Positions 21,594 through 56,166 of a DNA stretch of 64,000 nucleotides are shown in pieces; positions within the stretch are counted from its first letter, which is position 1; each line of letters opens with the position of its first letter. Made by a program: the position numbers and the translations under genes. The DNA is taken from sequence record OR413585.1; one strand, given 5' to 3'. Below the pieces are notes generated by a model, which ran no database searches, had not been told where the DNA came from, and saw only the letters and a list, made by a program, of their open reading frames with translations.

Positions 21594-22078
21594 GCGTTCT
21601 GTTTGATGTGGCGGATATTGCGAACCAATATAGCGCGACTCGGTTTTACGAGCATGTTCGTGAAGCGGCATTGCGTGTACTGGAAGCCAGTAACCTGGAG
21701 ATTGATGAAACACAGATACGTGATTTTTATCAACGTTTTGCGTTTGCGTATATCATCGGTGTGAAAACTCGTGACCCTTCGACGATGGTTGATTTGTTAC
21801 AGGAAGACACGCTTGAACCTCTGGGCAATTGGGAGTTGGTGTCCGATGGTCTGTCCGTTGACCAGTTCGCTAAGGAAACGTCTGTCGATACGACGTTTCT
21901 GGCAGCACAAGGTTCGCCCGAACAACATCAAGCCGCCTTCGGCGCTGCGGTAAGTTTGCTGGCCGAAGAGTTAACAAACTTAACTGGTTTTGCTGGGCTG
22001 ATAGAGTCGCTGTATCCGGGGCGATATCAAACGTATGTGGGTGATAGTTTTAACGATGTGGTGTTAATCTGCGAATGA
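21590..22078 (+). CDS. Hypothetical protein (162 aa)
   Basis: ATGA coupling, GGAGG RBS. Confidence 0.72.
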   Translation: MSVLFDVADIANQYSATRFYEHVREAALRVLEASNLEIDETQIRDFYQRFAFAYIIGVKTRDPSTMVDLLQEDTLEPLGNWELVSDGLSVDQFAKETSVDTTFLAAQGSPEQHQAAFGAAVSLLAEELTNLTGFAGLIESLYPGRYQTYVGDSFNDVVLICE

Positions 22079-22506
22079 AACTGTACATGACCATAGGCGA
22101 AGTCTTCAAATATGAGTCGTTGTTGGCACGGGCCGAGATTGCTGATACTAGCGAGATCGAGCCCGCTGTCGCTTATTTGTTTCTGGCCAGTTACGCCGAA
22201 TTAACGGTACGTTCTATTGTTAATGGGCTAGGTAAGGGTAAGAACTTTCTTACTTTTATTCCCCCAGACCCTGCGTTGATACTGGAACAGTTGCGCGGGC
22301 TGTGGGGTACTGAAAAGGTGCTGCCTCTAAACTGCTACAGCATGAGCAGTGGGATTAAGGATGATGTTCGGTTCTATGAAATCCTTTCCGTGATAGAACG
22401 TGTGTGGGGCATGGCTGGCTTGACTCCAGAAGACGGAGCAAAAAAGACAAAGGTTTCACTCCTTATGAATGAAATTGGCAACGCACTCATCTGTGTTGAA
22501 TGTTAA
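22075..22506 (+). CDS. Hypothetical protein (143 aa)
   Basis: ATGA coupling. Confidence 0.65.
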   Translation: MKLYMTIGEVFKYESLLARAEIADTSEIEPAVAYLFLASYAELTVRSIVNGLGKGKNFLTFIPPDPALILEQLRGLWGTEKVLPLNCYSMSSGIKDDVRFYEILSVIERVWGMAGLTPEDGAKKTKVSLLMNEIGNALICVEC

Positions 22507-29461: not shown

Positions 29462-30829
29462 GTGAGAAAGGTACCAAAATTCTACGGAATATCCGGCCGG
29501 TTGGTTAGTCAGGATAACTATTTGTCCGATTTGCAAATAGAAGCTGCTGCCAAAGGTATTAAACCACCCACTATTATTAACGATGTCGCCGTTAACGGGG
29601 ATGCGATCGAGGTTGCTGAACTTATCGATCGCATGGTACAGAACAGAATCGTTGACGAAGAACTGAACTCTGCACCGATTTGTAGTTTGGATTGTCCGGC
29701 ACCGATCGCGCATCGTTACAATCTCGGTTGTAAGTGTCCGACGTGTGGCTATGTTGTAACTGAACATCGAATTGAATCCGATGTCTGGTTACGTGCACCC
29801 GATGAAATGGGTAACTTCGTCAACCCACGATTCTGGGCAATGTTCAATGCTTTCTTTAATAGCAAGTTGAAGAAGTTTGAACGTAACAAGGTCACTATCG
29901 AACGCGGTAATGACTTGATGATGTGGATGATTGACCCGTATTACCGTATAGAAGAACCAGACGGTAAACGCGCACATGCTGTGAAACGTGTATTGGAAGA
30001 ACATGGTTTCGTTCGTGGCTTGCGCAATCTGGTTGATAACCACGTTAGTATCTTTAACATCCTTACCACGCCAGAAGCCTGGAAGGAAATCTTCGCACCT
30101 AATCGGCATAACGCCGCTGAAGGTGAACGCTTACGTTTACAATGGAAGGAGCTATTCGAAACGCAACGTCACGCATTCTTCCCAAGACATTTACCGCTAA
30201 TCTCCTCTAAACTTATCGTTACTGAGGAAGGTCGTCGTGGTGTCATGGTAGACCCAGTGTTCACGGGTGCTATTGATGCGGTGAAAAATATCGCGTTGCT
30301 CTATACGCGGCGTAAAGCGATCGAACCACGTTTTCTGATTAGTCGCGCTTTGAAGGCGAACCGTCAGTTAACGTACTTCCACATGGACTTCCGTCGTGAG
30401 TCTATGGAAGGTAAACCGGGTGACTATCGTGCGAAATTGGGTTCTACCCATATCCCGTTCGGTGGTCGTGCAACCATCTCACCTATCTCAGAACCACACG
30501 ATGCCTGGAAGTTAAAAGCACCGTGGCGTTGGATGGTTGGGTTGATGTCGACCCACATCGAGAACAAACTGCTACGACGGGGTTATTCGTCACGGCAGTG
30601 TGAACGTATCGTTGCGAAAGCGGCAATGCAGTATGACCCGCTTGTAGACGAAATCTTTAAAGAACTGATTCGTGAATCCCCAGGCGGTCTTGGGATCATG
30701 GTCATACCGTTACGTAACCCAACGCTGGTACAGTTGTCTATTCAAACGCTGTACATCGATGAAGTTGTTACCGATGTTAACCAGTGTTCGCTGCGTATCT
30801 CTGACCGTGTGATCAAGATGGCTAACGGT
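29462..30829 (+). CDS. Non-virion RNA polymerase beta' N-terminal subunit, exon 1
   Basis: Zn-ribbon CKCPTCG, GGRATISP and LRNPTL motifs; the exon ends at ..MANG just before the catalytic DFDGD. Confidence 0.85.
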
Positions 30830-31185
30830 TCGAAAAGAGCCCCATCGGACGGGAAACCTCTGATGCGTATTCTCCTGAAATGCTGGGAAACCCTAAAGCG
30901 TATCTACCAGAAATGGGGACGAAAGTCTGAAACAACAGATACGATGACCTACGCTAAACAATACTGCTAAGGGTTGTGTTGATGGGTAATCAGCAGCGAA
31001 GCCTCGTGAGAGGAACGTTCAACGACTATCGCTGAAATGCGAGTAGGGGTCCTAGTGGACTTCGAAGTGGGAGAACACCTAAGGCGAAAGCTATGGTGAA
31101 GATATAGTCTGTGCCTTATCGAGAGATAAGGAGGGTGTCTTAGCACACCTGCTGTATACGGAAACGGTATACGGTGGACAAACAG
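30830..31185 (+). mobile_element. Group I intron (IA-like, 356 nt, no homing endonuclease ORF)
   Basis: P1 GGT|TC-GAAAA-GAGCC with U.G pair; P AAATGCTGGGAA; Q AATCAGCAGC; R GTTCAACGACTAT; S AAGATATAGTCT; P3 TTCTCC/GGAGAA; P7.1 and P7.2 hairpins; terminal G. Splicing restores the frame N-G-D-F-D-G-D. Confidence 0.9.
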
Positions 31186-31413
31186 GATTTTGATGGTGAC
31201 CAGTTCCAGGTACGTTTGCCAGTCGATGAAACTGAGATGAAGTTGGCGCTCCAATTCCGTCCGGATAACGGCTTTATGTCTTCTACTGATGTGGACCGCG
31301 TAGAACACGGCATGGTTTTACATAACGAGCTAATCAGTATGCAGAACCAGTTCCTTATTGAAGCAGATGAGGATGATGAAGAAGGCATTCCGTTGGAAGC
31401 GGTGATGGGCTAA
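31186..31413 (+). CDS. Non-virion RNA polymerase beta' N-terminal subunit, exon 2
   Basis: Begins DFDGDQ (catalytic aspartate triad); joined product is 531 aa. Confidence 0.85.
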   Translation, partial: DFDGDQFQVRLPVDETEMKLALQFRPDNGFMSSTDVDRVEHGMVLHNELISMQNQFLIEADEDDEEGIPLEAVMG

Positions 31414-45520: not shown

Positions 45521-48265
45521 ATGGTAGAAATTCAAATGACTTACACGAGTATGGGGGTACGGGTTGAAGTCCCCATCCGCCAGGCTGAAAGGGCCATACT
45601 CGCGTGGGCCGAAGAGAATATGCACGCCCCAAAGATGGGCAAGCAACATGGACGAATAACCACGGAACGCGGCGATGCGTACTACGCCCACATTCCGTCT
45701 TTAAGGACATTCATTTTCCATAAAGTGTTCGCTGAGAAGATTAAACATATCCTCCAACGGGCAGCAATTGAATACGCTTTTCAGTACAAGCTTACAGAGC
45801 ACCATCCCGAACGTGCAGAACCTTATAAGTGCACGTTTGATAATTACGGATTCAAGATGGAAGAGACAGACCCAGAGTCGCGTTTCTATTATCAGAATGA
45901 AGTCGTAGCCGCCGCAACAGATCCATCGCGTTCACAAACGGTTTTCGCGATACAAACAGGAAGAGGAAAAGCTCTCGCGCATGGTACGCGTGTGCGTGTA
46001 CCGGGTGGTTGGAAGAACATTGAGGATATACAGCTAGGTGATTACGTTACGGGGCGTGATGGAAAACCAGCAATGGTCTCTGGAGTGTTCCCACAGGGTG
46101 TGGTTGACCTGTATCAGGTGACGTTTTGGGATGGTAGGAGTGTTGACGTATGTGGCGAGCACTTGTGGCAAAGCTACTACGTTAATACCACCGAGAATCG
46201 TCGCTGGGGTGTACGTGATACCCTAGAGATGAAACGTTTAATTTCGATGCCTAATCCACGGGTATACATCCCATTACCAGAACCAGAGGAAATGCCAGCT
46301 AAGGATTTTGTCATTCATCCGTATTTGCTCGGTATCCTCTTGGGTGATGGCTCCCTATCGATGCCGGGCGTTTTATACACCAAAGGCGATGTGGAGATTC
46401 GTGACCGTGTTGCTGAGGTCATGCCCGCTGGACATACAATCCATGATTCGTCGTACAGCGATGGGATAACGAAGTGCATCTCTTGTCCCGGTGGTGTTAA
46501 CCTTGTCCGCAGAGAGCTTGAGCGGTTAGGGTTAATCGGCTGCAGGTCTTGGGAAAAGTTCATACCTGGAGATTACTTCGAAACGTCCATCGAACAACGG
46601 TGGGAGTTGTTGCGTGGCTTGATGGATACTGACGGTACTGTGGATAAGGATGGTGGTACGCCTTCTTTCTGTTCCACCAGTAAAGAATTGGCTTTAGGTG
46701 TTCAGGAACTTGTGCGGTCTTTAGGAGGGATTGCAACACTACGCGAGAAACGTCCGTTCTTCACACACAACGGCGAACGTCGTGAAGGTCGTTTGGCTTA
46801 TAACGTCTCCATCCGCCACAAAACACCATCGAAACTGTTCCATCTTCCAAGGAAGAAAGAACTGTGTCGTGATAACGGACAATACACCGATATACTGAAA
46901 CTCCGTGTTAAGTCTATCGAACCCATTGGTCGTGATCTTGCCACGTGTATTCGTGTCGAGAACGACGATGCGTTGTTTGTGGTGGACAAGTGGATCGTTA
47001 CGCACAACACCAAGACCTGTATGAAGTCGATGGTTAAACGGGGAACCCGTACCGCATTGATTCACCGTCCGTCATACGTTCCCAAATGGCTGTTTGACGT
47101 CTGTGATGATGAAACAGGACTTCGTATACTTCGTGACGAGGTGTTAGTTTGTACAGGCGTACAGGCGATTTACGACGCGTTGGAGATGGGTAAGTCGGGA
47201 GAGCTAGATAGACGCGGTATTAAGGTAATAATCCTCCCCACGGTCTCTCTACAGCGTTTCCTGAAGGAGTACATTAACACTGCTGCGACTAACCCTGTGG
47301 ACCTGGATACGTTTTATGATGTTCTGGGTGTGGGTCTGGTGGCGATGGATGAGGTGCACGAGCATTTTCACCTCGTTTACATGGCTGGTATAATGTTGAA
47401 CCCGCCGGCATCGATAGAGATGTCTGCAACTCTTAAACCGGGTAGCAGTAAAGCCTTTATCGCGGAGCGGTATTTAGAACGTTTCCCAATGGAGTACCGA
47501 ATCAGTATTCCAATCATTCCGGTGGTTGACGTGAAAGCGTTGTACTATCGACTGGATGATAAGAAGTTCGCGTGGTGGGCGTCGAAGATGACGCCGTATA
47601 ACCACAAACTCTTCGAAGGGAAGCTGATTAAAGAGAACTTGCATTTAGAATACGCGAACATGATCTGGGATGTGGTTGAGAAATCGTTCCTTAAACGGTA
47701 TCAACCCGGCCAGAAGTGTTTGCTGCTATTTGCCACGGTTGCAATGTGTGAGTTCTTTACCGAGTATGTGAAAGATAAGTTATCGCGTGACCCTGTATTC
47801 CATCCACTCATGGTGGCGAAATATAATGCAGGCGATTCGTATGACGACTTTATCCAAGCAGACTTCTCTATCTCCACACCGGGGAAAGCGGGGACTGCGG
47901 TCGATAAACCTGGGTTGGTGCACATGTACATCTCAACCCCGGTAGAAGACCAGCAACTGAACGAACAGATGGCCGGTCGTCCACGTAAGATTCTCCACAA
48001 CGAGTGGGGTGAAATAGACCCAACGGTGTGGTTATTCCATGCGTATAACGTACCGAAGCATTGCAATTACTTGAATGCCCGCCAGAAATCACTCAAGGAT
48101 GTCGTATTGTCGTTCCGTATCGCGACATCCCCCTACGTTGTAAGGAAATCACATGCTCACTCCGCCGCGTCCAGCAGAGCCACTGCCGCCCTACATCGGA
48201 ATGACTTTAGCAAGTTTTCTCGAAAACATTCTAAAGGCGTATCCCGGCGTAGAAGACGTCGCTAA
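45521..48265 (+). CDS. SF2 DExH helicase containing an intein (914-aa precursor, 568 aa spliced)
   Basis: Start moved to the ATG after GAGGGG; Walker A QTGRGK|T split by the intein; DEVH, MSAT and QMAGRPR motifs. Confidence 0.85.
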   Translation: MVEIQMTYTSMGVRVEVPIRQAERAILAWAEENMHAPKMGKQHGRITTERGDAYYAHIPSLRTFIFHKVFAEKIKHILQRAAIEYAFQYKLTEHHPERAEPYKCTFDNYGFKMEETDPESRFYYQNEVVAAATDPSRSQTVFAIQTGRGKALAHGTRVRVPGGWKNIEDIQLGDYVTGRDGKPAMVSGVFPQGVVDLYQVTFWDGRSVDVCGEHLWQSYYVNTTENRRWGVRDTLEMKRLISMPNPRVYIPLPEPEEMPAKDFVIHPYLLGILLGDGSLSMPGVLYTKGDVEIRDRVAEVMPAGHTIHDSSYSDGITKCISCPGGVNLVRRELERLGLIGCRSWEKFIPGDYFETSIEQRWELLRGLMDTDGTVDKDGGTPSFCSTSKELALGVQELVRSLGGIATLREKRPFFTHNGERREGRLAYNVSIRHKTPSKLFHLPRKKELCRDNGQYTDILKLRVKSIEPIGRDLATCIRVENDDALFVVDKWIVTHNTKTCMKSMVKRGTRTALIHRPSYVPKWLFDVCDDETGLRILRDEVLVCTGVQAIYDALEMGKSGELDRRGIKVIILPTVSLQRFLKEYINTAATNPVDLDTFYDVLGVGLVAMDEVHEHFHLVYMAGIMLNPPASIEMSATLKPGSSKAFIAERYLERFPMEYRISIPIIPVVDVKALYYRLDDKKFAWWASKMTPYNHKLFEGKLIKENLHLEYANMIWDVVEKSFLKRYQPGQKCLLLFATVAMCEFFTEYVKDKLSRDPVFHPLMVAKYNAGDSYDDFIQADFSISTPGKAGTAVDKPGLVHMYISTPVEDQQLNEQMAGRPRKILHNEWGEIDPTVWLFHAYNVPKHCNYLNARQKSLKDVVLSFRIATSPYVVRKSHAHSAASSRATAALHRNDFSKFSRKHSKGVSRRRRRR
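45971..47008 (+). mobile_element. Class 3 intein with LAGLIDADG homing endonuclease (346 aa)
   Basis: Starts with Ala (ALAHG); block B CGEHLW; block F ATCIRV; ends VTHN followed by Thr; LLGILLGDG and LRGLMDTDG motifs. Confidence 0.88.
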
Positions 48266-49217: not shown

Positions 49218-51180
49218 GATCCAAGATCAGCGTCCGGGTAATGCCCGTCGCCCTAATCCCGACCAGCCAGCCCCTGTGGCGGCTGCTACCCAACAAGAGA
49301 TGATTCTTCCGACCGTGCCTGATGACGCGACCTCGGATGCAATCATCATGGCTATTAAACAAGCCAATCCCGATTTTTCTTTTGCCCGTGCAGAAGAAGT
49401 TTATCACCAACACTATCATCGTCCTGAGCCTAAGCTTGAGCGTCCGACGTTTGTAGAAGAGGCGTTGCCTGAACCTGCTGCGCCTGTACCACCGGCACCT
49501 CAGACTTTTGCTGAACAGGTGCAGGAGCACCTACATCGTGCCCCGGAACCGGTAGTAGAGAAAGCGCCTGCGGTAGAACCTGCTCCGCAGCCAAAAGCTC
49601 CGGAAGCGGTTGCACCGGCCCAGCCGGCTGTAAAAGAAATGGAAGATGCAGCACCGAAGGTTCCGGAACAACAACAGGTGCGTGAGATTAACTTCGGTAA
49701 TACCCATTTAGCTGAAACTGCCGAAATGGGTGAAGACGAAGCTGATCGTATTCTGACACAGTCGAAGATGTTGATTGGTCTGAAACAAGACCCTAACATC
49801 ATTGCAGACTCCCTGCAAAAGTTCCTCGGTAATATTAAACGTTCACCGAAAGACGGCCGGCTGCTATTCGAAAGCCCTGAACAGCAACAGGTATACGACG
49901 ACATCTATCGTGCTTTGAACATGACCCCGCCACGTCTACAGGACGGCGTACCAGCATTCGCGGGTGCACTGGACCGTGGCGACACCGCTTGGGAACAGCG
50001 TGTGATGTTGCCGGACGGTAAGGCATCTGGTGCTATTGCACCGCGTGACAATATGCACACTGGCGCGCTGGCTGCTTTGCGCCGTGTACGTAAGTCGGGT
50101 ATTCCGAATATGGTTTGGTTGCCGGCCACAGGTATCTACGTGGGCTTCCGCGCACCGCATGAACGTGACCTTTGTGACTTCGACATGCGCCTCACACTGG
50201 AAACTGCGACCATCGGTATGCAGACCTACGGTTTGATGCTGTCGTCGTCTTCTGGTGTGTACATGCGTCACATGGTTGAATTCGCACTTCAGTTTGTTAC
50301 TGAAGCAACCATCGACTGCGCGGGTAACGATCTGCGTACTGTGCTGTTGGATACCATTGATCTGGCTGACTACTGGCTGGTAATTCTGGGTCCGCTGCAA
50401 GCGAAATGGCCGTCTGGTATTCCATGGACGCTGATGTGCGGTGAGGACGGTTGTACTCAGCAGGAAGATGTGAAGCTGAATATCGCGCGTTGTATCCGTT
50501 TCGGTTCCGGTCTGTTTAGCGACCTGCAGAAACAACTGTGGGCACGTCAACGCGGTACTGAGCGTCCTGTGATTTCCATTGCTGAACAGCGCGAATATAT
50601 CGCGGCGCATCAGGTTGACCCATCCTCGGTATTTGAATACCACGACGTGCGTGTTGAATTTGGCCGTTCTACCCTGGGTAGCTTCTTTGACTCCACTGAG
50701 AAGTGGATTGAAGATGTTAACGCGTCAACTACGGCAGCGCTGTCTGAATTTGCTACCGAGCGTGAACGTGAATCCCATATGCGTTTAACTGCAGAAGCCC
50801 GTCGCTTAACGCGTTACGCTCACATGGTGAAATCTATCACCGTTAATGAGCAACGTGAAGTAAACGGTGAAATGCAGGTTATCCCACAAACTGAAACCGA
50901 CACAGCGAAAATCGTTGAGATGCTGGAAGAGCTGTCTTCCGACCGTATCTACGTTGGTCAGTTTGAAAACGCGATTGCTGAATACAACGAACGTACACGT
51001 TTAGCGGTATTCGGTTACATGGGTAAACGCTGCCCGGCGTGTGGTAAAACACACGGCGAGAAAGACGGTCTGTATCGCGGTATTGTTACCATCAGTCCGG
51101 ACAGGGTTTTTTTCGTGCTCTCTCGAGTGGTGTCCGAGATTCAGAAATTCTTGCTGGATCAATACGCCGATATTGGCTAG
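49210..51180 (+). CDS. Probable tail/baseplate assembly chaperone, T4 gp26-like (656 aa)
   Basis: Pro/Ala/Glu-rich N-terminus; DYWLVILGP..CGEDGC and C-terminal CPACG..FF resemble gp26-family proteins (by eye); slippery T-TTT-TTC at 51108. Confidence 0.5.
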   Translation: MSEIQDQRPGNARRPNPDQPAPVAAATQQEMILPTVPDDATSDAIIMAIKQANPDFSFARAEEVYHQHYHRPEPKLERPTFVEEALPEPAAPVPPAPQTFAEQVQEHLHRAPEPVVEKAPAVEPAPQPKAPEAVAPAQPAVKEMEDAAPKVPEQQQVREINFGNTHLAETAEMGEDEADRILTQSKMLIGLKQDPNIIADSLQKFLGNIKRSPKDGRLLFESPEQQQVYDDIYRALNMTPPRLQDGVPAFAGALDRGDTAWEQRVMLPDGKASGAIAPRDNMHTGALAALRRVRKSGIPNMVWLPATGIYVGFRAPHERDLCDFDMRLTLETATIGMQTYGLMLSSSSGVYMRHMVEFALQFVTEATIDCAGNDLRTVLLDTIDLADYWLVILGPLQAKWPSGIPWTLMCGEDGCTQQEDVKLNIARCIRFGSGLFSDLQKQLWARQRGTERPVISIAEQREYIAAHQVDPSSVFEYHDVRVEFGRSTLGSFFDSTEKWIEDVNASTTAALSEFATERERESHMRLTAEARRLTRYAHMVKSITVNEQREVNGEMQVIPQTETDTAKIVEMLEELSSDRIYVGQFENAIAEYNERTRLAVFGYMGKRCPACGKTHGEKDGLYRGIVTISPDRVFFVLSRVVSEIQKFLLDQYADIG

Positions 51181-51224
51181 ACCAGGAAGACGTTCCGTCC
51201 GAGCAAATCATTACAACGCTCAAG

Positions 51225-51596
51225 ATGGATACCACCTCTCTCTTCAAGCAGCGTAGCACACGTCCTATTACGTATCAGGAAGCCCATAACGAGCTTCTGG
51301 AAGCGTATGACCGTACACTGGCTCTTAATACCGGCGACCATCAGGTAGGGTTGTCGGATTTTGAAAACCCGGTATATGGTAGTCTTTACGATATCTGGTA
51401 CGCCACTTACTTACGTGAAGAGGTCGGTGAAAACTACCGGATGTCGATAGACGAGTTCCTCGACCGCCCCCGCTGGCAGATACTGCTGATGCTCGACAAT
51501 ATCCGTCGTCGCAAAGCGATTATCGCCAAAGCCGGCGAGCAGGTGGCAGGTGAACGTGCGTTAAAGGAGCTGGAGAAAGATCTGACGGGACATTAA
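51225..51596 (+). CDS. T4 gp51/gpT-like chaperone domain; probably expressed as a -1 frameshift fusion
   Basis: YRMSIDEFLDRPRWQILLML pattern; no clear RBS; frame open from 51048 through the slippery site. Confidence 0.55.
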   Translation: MDTTSLFKQRSTRPITYQEAHNELLEAYDRTLALNTGDHQVGLSDFENPVYGSLYDIWYATYLREEVGENYRMSIDEFLDRPRWQILLMLDNIRRRKAIIAKAGEQVAGERALKELEKDLTGH

Positions 51597-51604
51597 TAGA
51601 AATT

Positions 51605-51635
51605 CGGGGCTTCGGCCCCGTTTTCTTTTTTTTAT
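51605..51635 (+). terminator. Intrinsic terminator
   Basis: CGGGGC-TTCG-GCCCCG followed by a T run. Confidence 0.8.
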
Positions 51636-54381: not shown

Positions 54382-56166
54382 TTAGAACCCGCAGATGTAC
54401 TCCATAGGCTCTGTCACTACTTCCCCTTGCTTACGTAAGAACGTAGACAGGACAGTGTCTTTGTCCGGTAAGCAGAAGAAGTCTGTCGCTATTTCCATGG
54501 CATTAACTCGCCCAGCAGTTAAGTTGACGCCCGTGCGACGTCGAATCTCTTCACTAACCCCGTTGATGGACAGCAGTTCAATGAGTGTGGTCTCACGAGA
54601 CTGGTTCATCATGTTTGTGGCCGATGGGTAAGCCTGGGTTAAGTCCGCATCCGCAGTTTGACCACGGAACGCAGAGTAATATTCGTCAATCTCCTCCAGA
54701 ATGTTATTCAGACCGTTCTCAGCATTCATACATGCCGTCAGGGTAACAATCCAACCGTCTGTACCGATAACCTCTTCATCGTAATCGTTACGCATTGCAG
54801 ACCCTACGGAACCGATGACGTATCCTTTGTCATACAGATAATAGGTAAAGGCCACGCAGATACGTTTTGGTAGCGACGGGAAGATATCGTACATTGAGAA
54901 ACCTGCCAGAATGGATATTGCTGAAGACAGGTCGTTCGTCTTCTTATCCAGCAACACGATTAACAAGTTATCCATCATGTTGTATACGGCATATTCGGCA
55001 GGGTAGTCCCGTTGTGCTTTTATGTGCCATTGCAGGTTATCTTCATACGGCAGTCCAGGAATGTCGAGCTTGTGTAAACCGAGTTCGGTGTACAGTATGG
55101 CAGATAACTTGTACGAAGGACGTTGCCCTTCGTGGACACGCAACGAACGGAATAACACCATGGCATCCACACAGTAGAAAGACGCAGTACAGTAGAGTAC
55201 GTGCCACTGTTGTGACGGTGCTTTGGTGAGTGACTTGGATTCCGTCTTTTTGTTCGCCTGGTCTTCTTTAAACCACAGACGACGGTATTTCTCCGGCACA
55301 TCCGGATGGTTAAAGACGCCCAGTGGATCGATACCTTCTTTCTGCAAGGTTTCCAACATGCGTGAAATATCGAACTGGTGGTTCCATGCGACTAGCAAAT
55401 CAGGAAGACGCGGATGAATCTCTTCGAACATCCTGACGATGCACTGCCCTGCCGTAGCGCAGGTATAGGTGAAGATTTTATAACCACTGATAATGTCTTT
55501 GGTCTTTGTCACCTTTTCGCCAGTCTTTTTGTCTTTCTCATCGAATTCGATTTTGCTTAAGAGTTCCTGCGCTTTTTTGAGAATGACTTCTTCCGCGTTT
55601 TTACCGATGCGGTCCATGTAGTTCTTAGCACCAAAGAAATGGATTTCGTCGTCTAAGATAAATGACACGATCCACGGTTCCTTCGTGCCGTCCATTTCGT
55701 TGGTCTCCACGTCGTATACGCAAAGACGGTTAGGGCTGATGTTGTTCGGCCAGCGCTTTAAATATTTCTGTTTAATCCAGCTGGTAATCGGTAAGTCGGC
55801 CCAATAAACGTACGGGCTAGTACAGACACGACGCAGGTTCTTTTTCGGGTCAGGAAAACGTGCACCTAAACCCATCTGCAACGTCTTCGCCATCTGCGCA
55901 TCAGTAGTCCAGAGTTCTTGACATTTTCCTTTTTCTTCGAACTCTTTTTTCTCCTGGTGGTTACGATATTCTTCACGGGTAACGTACACCGGACGCTTTA
56001 AATTCTCACGCATTACCAAGCGCGGGATAAGCCTGCCATCCTTAGTATGGATGACCTCTTTGATGAGGACAAAGTCATTTTCTTTTTCTTCGTCCGTCGC
56101 ATAAGCGACGTGCTTGCACTCTTTAGCGATGACATCCTCGGGTGCGTAATAGGTATTGATTTCCAT
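54382..56166 (-). CDS. Split B-family DNA polymerase, N-terminal 3'-5' exonuclease and motif A subunit
   Basis: ExoI YDVET, ExoII AWNHQFD, ExoIII YNMMD; polymerase motif A DADLTQAYPS. Confidence 0.85.
   Translation of the reverse strand: MEINTYYAPEDVIAKECKHVAYATDEEKENDFVLIKEVIHTKDGRLIPRLVMRENLKRPVYVTREEYRNHQEKKEFEEKGKCQELWTTDAQMAKTLQMGLGARFPDPKKNLRRVCTSPYVYWADLPITSWIKQKYLKRWPNNISPNRLCVYDVETNEMDGTKEPWIVSFILDDEIHFFGAKNYMDRIGKNAEEVILKKAQELLSKIEFDEKDKKTGEKVTKTKDIISGYKIFTYTCATAGQCIVRMFEEIHPRLPDLLVAWNHQFDISRMLETLQKEGIDPLGVFNHPDVPEKYRRLWFKEDQANKKTESKSLTKAPSQQWHVLYCTASFYCVDAMVLFRSLRVHEGQRPSYKLSAILYTELGLHKLDIPGLPYEDNLQWHIKAQRDYPAEYAVYNMMDNLLIVLLDKKTNDLSSAISILAGFSMYDIFPSLPKRICVAFTYYLYDKGYVIGSVGSAMRNDYDEEVIGTDGWIVTLTACMNAENGLNNILEEIDEYYSAFRGQTADADLTQAYPSATNMMNQSRETTLIELLSINGVSEEIRRRTGVNLTAGRVNAMEIATDFFCLPDKDTVLSTFLRKQGEVVTEPMEYICGF

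Follow-up and report, generated by a model that had tools for sequence, protein, structure and literature searches.

A conserved core gene and the reading frame behind it

Here, we analyse a two-gene unit on a 64,000-nucleotide stretch of sequence record OR413585.1 (the window), in which an open reading frame (ORF) of 656 amino acids (aa) is followed by an annotated ORF of 123 aa that lies in the -1 frame relative to the first (Table 1). The region matches Salmonella phage SPLA5c (OR413585, genus Seoulvirus) at 100% identity and SPN3US at 98%. The large protein is the product of core gene cg18 of the nucleus-forming jumbo phages (Chimalliviridae), to which it belongs by full-length homology to phiKZ gp77, RAY gp267, and Goslar gp081. 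The published core-gene table enters cg18 (Goslar gp081, PhiKZ gp077, RAY gp267) as "hypothetical", and the downstream ORF is absent from it (PMC10299810 supplement). Near its 3' end, cg18 contains a slippery heptamer at which ribosomes probably shift into the -1 frame, thereby joining the two readings in a second, longer isoform.

Relatives of cg18 were found by tblastn in 212 phage records, including phiKZ gp77, 201phi2-1 gp136, and RAY gp267. All 13 large proteins tested matched phrog_8054/4585, and synteny with homologs of gp78, gp79, and gp80 is preserved around the gene. Nothing terminator-like or promoter-like was found between the 656-aa ORF and the ORF at 51225, and both have a single terminator in common. 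GenBank records of relatives give the two ORFs as separate hypothetical proteins, and a frameshift is marked in none of them.

Table 1 Features of the cg18 locus, in coordinates of the window
Feature	Position	Strand	Remarks
Zero-frame ORF, 656 aa	49210..51180	+	Homolog of SPN3US gp39, phiKZ gp77, RAY gp267, and Goslar gp081
T7 run followed by C	51107-51113	+	Contains all but the last base of the heptamer
In-register heptamer T_TTT_TTC	51108-51114	+	Phe634 and Phe635 codons
-1-frame reading after a slip	51114..51596	+	160 codons and stop; frame open; aligns family-wide
Overlap read in two frames, 66 nucleotides (nt)	51115..51180	+	Zero frame: last 21 residues and stop; -1 frame: start of extension
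Inverted repeat TCTCG-N9-CGAGA, 5 bp	51121..51139	+	Candidate stimulator, not backed by covariation; separated from the heptamer by a 6-nt spacer (51115-51120)
44 nt annotated as intergenic	51181..51224	+	Evolve as -1-frame codons
Annotated 123-aa ORF	51225..51596	+	Conserved core of the extension; SPN3US gp40 homolog; phrog_7580
Intrinsic-terminator-like hairpin and T tail	51605..51633	+	Closes the two-ORF unit

From position 51103, the zero frame reads AGG GTT TTT TTC. The -1 frame is without a stop from 51048 to 51596 and contains the ORF at 51225. The in-register heptamer, the spacer behind it, and the open -1 frame had all been pointed out in a first-pass annotation of this DNA and can be read directly in the sequence; its codon arithmetic is also correct, as 635 zero-frame and 160 -1-frame codons add up to a predicted long product of 795 aa. 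Between 9 and 58 kb, the window holds 13 homopolymers of at least 7 bases, and the run at 51107-51113 is the only one inside an annotated coding sequence (CDS). The remaining 12 (11 T runs and one A7) are intergenic and mostly form terminator tails, and the coding sequence of this part of the window (9000-58000) appears to avoid long T runs. T_TTT_TTY occurs in register once in the 46 CDS of the window (41.4 kb), namely at 51108. Twenty Phe-Phe pairs are encoded in these CDS; TTT comes first only at the 51108 site, and the other 19 pairs start with TTC (9 TTC-TTC, 10 TTC-TTT). As an H_HH.U_UU.Y heptamer, the sequence at 51108-51114 is of a type that ranks with the most efficient -1 motifs known from E. 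coli (PMC4066793), and both tRNAs could re-pair after a slip. The tetramers U_UU.C and U_UU.U rank second and third among the shift-prone tetramers of the same host, directly behind A_AA.G (PMC4066793).

Conservation of the slippery site and of the -1 frame

The junction was compared in 45 distinct sequences from GenBank phages and IMG/VR contigs, with protein identities to the window from 100% down to about 20%. The sample covers Seoulvirus, Erskinevirus, Machinavirus, Wellingtonvirus, Derbicusvirus, Phikzvirus, Serwervirus, Agricanvirus, Chiangmaivirus, Moabitevirus, Siatvirus, Eowynvirus, Iapetusvirus, Vibrio and Photobacterium Gorgonvirinae, and metagenomic lineages; phiKZ, 201phi2-1, RAY, and RSL2 are among the named phages. 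T_TTT_TTY stands in the same register in 41 of the 45 junctions (27 TTTTTTC, 14 TTTTTTT). The T_TTY tetramer is present in all of them, and is the sole retained part in four (pVa-21, PA1C, and two 201phi2-1-like contigs). With these four imperfect junctions included, the entire set falls into the motif classes that are shift-prone in E. coli (PMC4066793). The residue before Phe-Phe varies (V, L, T, G, S, Y, H), and its codon ends in T in each of the 41 full-heptamer junctions. The frame relation is -1 in 45/45 junctions, and the -1 frame is open for 150-181 codons past the site in every one; in many, it is closed just 2-18 nt ahead of the site. Of 13 junctions checked, 11 have a short +1 frame, with pVa-21 and RSL2 as exceptions. 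Conservation of TTTTTTC and of the open -1 frame in homologs had been named in the first-pass annotation as a check on its proposal, and these counts speak in its favour. In addition, the 71 nt around the site yield ungapped blastn matches in >50 records from five genera.

Two observations concern records at the margin of this census. In Erwinia phage PhiEaH1 (NC_023610, 1-1400), the cg18 homolog spans the start of the linear record and is unannotated there; it reads GGT TTT TTT in register and has a -1 frame open for 172 codons. The records of Salmonella phage SPFM were kept out of the junction census. In, for example, LR535901, LR535904, LR535906, LR535908, LR535911, LR535912, and LR535917, the locus aligns in 29-33 pieces with fragmented gene calls, which looks like error-rich assembly and not like biology.

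The -1 frame is conserved as protein even ahead of the possible start codons. Translated between the site and its stop, it aligns family-wide (phrog_12109 is matched by 16/16 phages), and the motif [FY][GW][LYI] is conserved exactly over the zero-frame stop. Substitution rates in the 44-nt gap are 0.37, 0.28, and 0.62 at the three -1-frame codon positions. Between the site and the zero-frame stop, synonymous-codon identity is 0.74-0.86 vs about 0.53 (range 0.40-0.66) in the rest of the gene, as expected for a stretch that is read in two frames. The nucleotides of the overlap are almost invariant across five genera, and dual coding sufficiently explains this near-invariance.

A conserved start codon is lacking. 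ATG 51225 has the weakest anti-Shine-Dalgarno (SD) pairing of the 47 annotated starts (+0.5 vs a median of -6.1 kcal/mol), which bears out the earlier remark that this ORF has no clear ribosome-binding site. In each of ten enterobacterial-clade phages compared, 44 nt separate the zero-frame stop from the codon that aligns with 51225. That codon is ATG in Seoulvirus only, TTG in Stratton, and CTT, CTC, or CTG in the Erwinia and Cronobacter phages pEa8, ChrisDB, Machina, Wellington, CR5, Phobos, and EarlPhillipIV; protein homology runs on through it, and the residues behind it are conserved in all ten phages. The nearest ATG, GTG, or TTG past the site is found after 6 to 255 nt, depending on the phage, and this variation in the first possible start accounts for the scattered annotated starts of the downstream ORF.

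These data bear on the view that no recoding takes place and that the downstream ORF is made independently, with ATG 51225 as its start in Seoulvirus and other or non-canonical start codons in the remaining phages, or through termination-reinitiation. The T run would then be kept for Phe-Phe only, and the overlap for the zero-frame helix or an RNA element. Such independent synthesis could draw on the ATG of Seoulvirus and the TTG of Stratton, on the starts that gene callers have assigned in every genome, and on the near-invariance of Phe-Phe in the protein. Yet neither the position nor the kind of start is conserved, and in phiKZ the first one comes only after 255 nt; the sequence upstream of all starts is conserved as -1-frame protein with codon periodicity, and the SD of 51225 is the worst of 47. 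The T that closes the codon before Phe-Phe despite amino-acid changes, and the uniform -1 frame relation, are likewise at odds with independent synthesis, which we regard as quite improbable.

The two readings have stayed apart. No natural in-frame fusion was found among 52 clusters found with the large protein (389-708 aa), and none of the best 150 of 1299 relatives, obtained by a profile search of 1.84 billion representatives, is extended at its C-terminus by a stretch as long as the downstream product. As single-ORF relatives are lacking in both sets, the two-frame layout appears to be maintained and not resolved by fusion. The zero-frame C-terminal helix is itself conserved and confidently modelled by AlphaFold2 (AF2), spanning model residues 481-504 with the slippery site at residues 485-486. 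The absence of fusions, which fits selection for two isoforms, and the conserved zero-frame helix together argue that the short and the long form may both matter.

An artefact or pseudogene, i.e., a single gene disrupted through an error in sequencing or a recent frameshift mutation within the homopolymer, was considered and rejected. Homopolymers are error-prone, and several SPFM records are visibly error-rich. However, the 45 distinct junctions, which stem from independently obtained isolates and metagenomes with about 20-100% protein identity, all show the same two-frame layout, the 71-nt junction aligns ungapped in >50 records, the zero-frame tail is conserved, with a helix modelled at high confidence, and neither the 52 clusters nor the best 150 of the 1299 relatives contain a single-ORF version. 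This explanation is effectively refuted.

Ribosomal and transcriptional slippage

Ribosomal -1 frameshifting at T_TTT_TTC, ancestral to the Chimalliviridae and kept throughout the family, is in our judgement the likely source of a 656-aa and a 795-aa isoform; the support for the long one is comparative throughout. Most ribosomes on cg18 would end in the zero frame and release the 656-aa protein. A fraction would slip one base back at the heptamer, with the two tRNA-Phe on UUU-UUC re-pairing on UUU-UUU, and would read 160 further codons in the -1 frame to the stop at 51594-51596. In the resulting long isoform, the last 21 residues, i.e., most of the predicted C-terminal helix, would be replaced by the products of the overlap, the 44-nt gap, and the 123-aa ORF. 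The device would have been present in the ancestor of the nucleus-forming jumbo phages. A programmed -1 shift joining the 656-aa ORF to the ORF at 51225 was the central proposal of the first-pass annotation. The slippery site, the frame relation, and the -1-frame coding upstream of the annotated starts are conserved family-wide and sustain it; its accompanying claims of a hairpin, a chaperone, and a gp51-like extension received little or no support.

Several points weigh against frameshifting at this site. Four lineages have just 5-6 T's and imperfect P-site re-pairing. Phe-Phe is nearly invariant in the protein itself, which accounts for part of the T richness. The ATG at 51225 might allow the small protein to be made independently to some extent in Seoulvirus. 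A convincing stimulatory RNA structure was not found by RNAalifold, by counting of pairs, or in 12 single folds. The inverted repeat put forward as a hairpin is present in the window, but its pairing shows 0 compensatory changes and is broken in Wellington, and it is absent from the minimum-energy structure of the 70 nt behind the site, which scores like shuffled sequence (z = -0.09). In 12 phages, the downstream 70 nt fold no better than shuffles (z -2.0 to +0.9), and RNAalifold returned nothing coherent downstream of the site. Given this result, shift efficiency may be modest. Finally, the literature searched, which lacks most subscription journals, mentions no frameshift here or in other genes of the Chimalliviridae. 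The texts on SPN3US genetics and proteomics, phiKZ antisense, the core genome, the Goslar structure, and the transposon sequencing (Tn-seq) preprint give neither a frameshift nor a function for these genes.

The main rival to ribosomal frameshifting is transcriptional slippage, in which the multisubunit RNA polymerase of the phage would stutter on the T run, so that some mRNAs differ in length by one base. The same long isoform would result, and conservation of the frame relation therefore does not tell the two mechanisms apart. Runs of 7-8 T's are found in 34/45 junctions, and T runs of at least 7 are otherwise kept out of CDS in the window; in E. coli genes, UUUUUUU is under-represented, possibly through such slippage (PMC4066793). 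Polymerase slippage is, however, expected to be poor in the 11/45 junctions with 5-6 T's (the four imperfect ones and those of the AGT/CAT TTT TTC type). These short runs still form an in-register ribosomal heptamer or tetramer, and the run always stands in the X_XXY_YYZ register. Because the 11 junctions stay in ribosomal register, the ribosome is the more economical family-wide explanation, and we consider slippage by the polymerase unlikely, though more conceivable in the genomes with 7-8 T's.

Relation to known proteins and recoding systems

The function of the large protein is not revealed by sequence comparison: it has no match in Pfam, among PDB sequences, or to a named PHROG, and the label "chaperone" given to it in the first-pass annotation is unproven. 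The AF2 model of aa 150-656 is of good quality (predicted local distance difference test (pLDDT) score 84.4, predicted template modelling score (pTM) 0.85). A fold search of this model against the PDB returned no neighbour (best E = 0.21). In the BFVD, T4-type "baseplate hub assembly" proteins come next after the protein's own family when the model (C-terminal 500 aa) is searched with Foldseek; these matches are 250-285 aa long, with E 5e-4 to 4e-2 and a target TM of about 0.5. One cg18 homolog is annotated as baseplate hub assembly on the same basis.

A likeness of the two parts to T4 gp26 and gp51, respectively, had been suggested, with these treated as two types of protein. The T4 sequences (NC_000866, 7803-9229) are 25% identical to each other and score 216 (gp26) and 178 bits (gp51) in end-to-end matches against one Pfam family, PF12322 (T4_baseplate); on these grounds they are paralogs, and the distinction of two types does not apply. 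In the T4 record, there is also an entry for an internal product, 26'. Profile comparison (hhalign) of the large-protein family with gp26/gp51 gave weak probabilities (26%, 1%, 9%), and that of the -1-frame product was null. No match to PF12322 at E <= 1 was obtained among 13 large proteins and 16 -1-frame products. The AF2 model of the -1-frame product alone (pLDDT 49) was too poor for a fold search. The suggested resemblance of the downstream part to gp51 thus found no backing in the profile comparisons, and that of the first part to gp26 is reduced to the remote Foldseek likeness. The comparisons do not establish the large protein as a member of the gp26/gp51 family. Distant kinship in fold to T4 hub-assembly proteins, as hinted at by the model, is a lead, made plausible by the T4-like hub of the Chimalliviridae (bioRxiv 10.64898/2026.04.21.720040).

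Like T4 gp26 and gp51, the two non-structural factors of hub assembly, the cg18 protein appears to be a non-virion protein. The cg18 homologs of phiKZ and 201phi2-1 carry no virion-protein mark in their records, and Goslar gp81 is unmentioned in the text of the Goslar virion-structure preprint (bioRxiv 10.64898/2026.04.21.720040). Unlike gp26 and gp51, which are made without a frameshift, the cg18 protein is twice as long, and its phiKZ homolog is among the early-expressed proteins (PMC11849849). It is tempting to go further and to picture cg18 as a distant gp26/gp51 counterpart and as an independently evolved, frameshift-dosed baseplate-hub chaperone analogous to lambda G/GT, with the shift as an obligatory family-wide device that sets a fixed isoform ratio and the long form as an unrecognised extra core protein. 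We regard this extended scenario as rather doubtful.

As recoding systems go, cg18 has several counterparts in other phages. Long-tailed phages reportedly have a conserved frameshift in their tail-assembly-chaperone genes, with lambda gpG/gpGT as the example that Xu et al. are said to have described in 2004. The parallel with this pair, already drawn in the first-pass annotation, holds for the layout. In both systems, two ORFs overlap, and slipping by -1 shortly before the end of the upstream one gives, or in cg18 would give, a C-terminally extended minor isoform beside a short major one; the arrangement is conserved across distant phages despite sequence divergence. The parallel does not extend to gene position or homology. 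Unlike lambda G/GT, the cg18 pair does not lie between tail tube and tape measure genes and lacks homology to chaperone families (no Pfam match; the PHROGs matched have no assigned function). Its upstream ORF has 656 aa vs about 140, and its heptamer is a T run.

Phage P2 uses a -1 shift on a T-run heptamer in its tail chaperone pair E/E'. In phage T7 gene 10A/10B, the -1 shift occurs at G_GUU_UUC (PMC5009743). Both share with cg18 a U-rich heptamer decoded by tRNA-Phe near the end of an ORF, enterobacterial hosts, and an extended isoform, and the T7 site, too, is without a classical nearby stimulator. In contrast to the capsid gene of T7 and the tail chaperone gene of P2, cg18 is of another gene family and function, and its site is conserved over a whole phage family with hosts from Pseudomonas to Vibrio and Ralstonia. 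The canonical X_XXY_YYZ motif is also found in OrfAB of IS3/IS911-type insertion sequence (IS) elements and in E. coli dnaX, and U_UU.U_UU.C is among the heptamers used by IS elements (PMC4066793). Stimulators have been defined for these sites (an SD-like element upstream; a hairpin or pseudoknot downstream), whereas none could be shown for cg18, and in dnaX the shifted frame ends at once instead of continuing for 160 codons.

Genes for a helicase, a hypothetical protein, a homolog of a head protein, and a subunit of the virion RNA polymerase neighbour the locus. Elsewhere in the window, an ORF of 914 aa (45521-48265, +) annotated as "terminase large subunit" corresponds to a homolog of the 568-aa SPN3US DNA helicase plus about 346 residues. 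These extra residues match Pfam LAGLIDADG_3, Hom_end_hint, and Hom_end, which indicates a putative intein with a homing endonuclease that is absent from SPN3US. Two CDS (29633-30970 and 31237-31413, +) are each annotated as "RNA polymerase beta subunit" and are separated by an unannotated gap of 266 nt; both starts have almost no SD, and the region 29633-31413 may be a split or interrupted gene. Other slippery motifs in register are A_AAA_AAG at 22440-22446 in a small hypothetical gene (CDS 22075-22506, +) and T_TTA_AAG, which occurs twice in the DNA polymerase gene (54382-56166, -).

As a mechanism, the -1 heptamer proposed for cg18 is a textbook case. The novelty lies in the gene concerned, in how widely the site is conserved, and in what follows for the annotation of a core gene. 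About 68 core genes define the nucleus-forming jumbo phages, a group under intensive study, and many of these genes, cg18 (phiKZ gp77) included, are without known function. If ribosomes do shift at this site, the locus is mis-described in every annotated genome of the family, with arbitrary starts assigned to a downstream ORF that is missing from the core-gene list. Tagging, depleting, or expressing "gp77" or "gp76.4" alone would then miss or disturb the long isoform. The site would represent a deeply conserved, apparently structure-independent frameshift on a U run, in hosts from Pseudomonas to Vibrio, and would join the few recoding events known from phage genes other than those for tail chaperones and capsids. 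For the Chimalliviridae, it would mean that one core gene gives rise to two proteins that differ in their C-terminal module.

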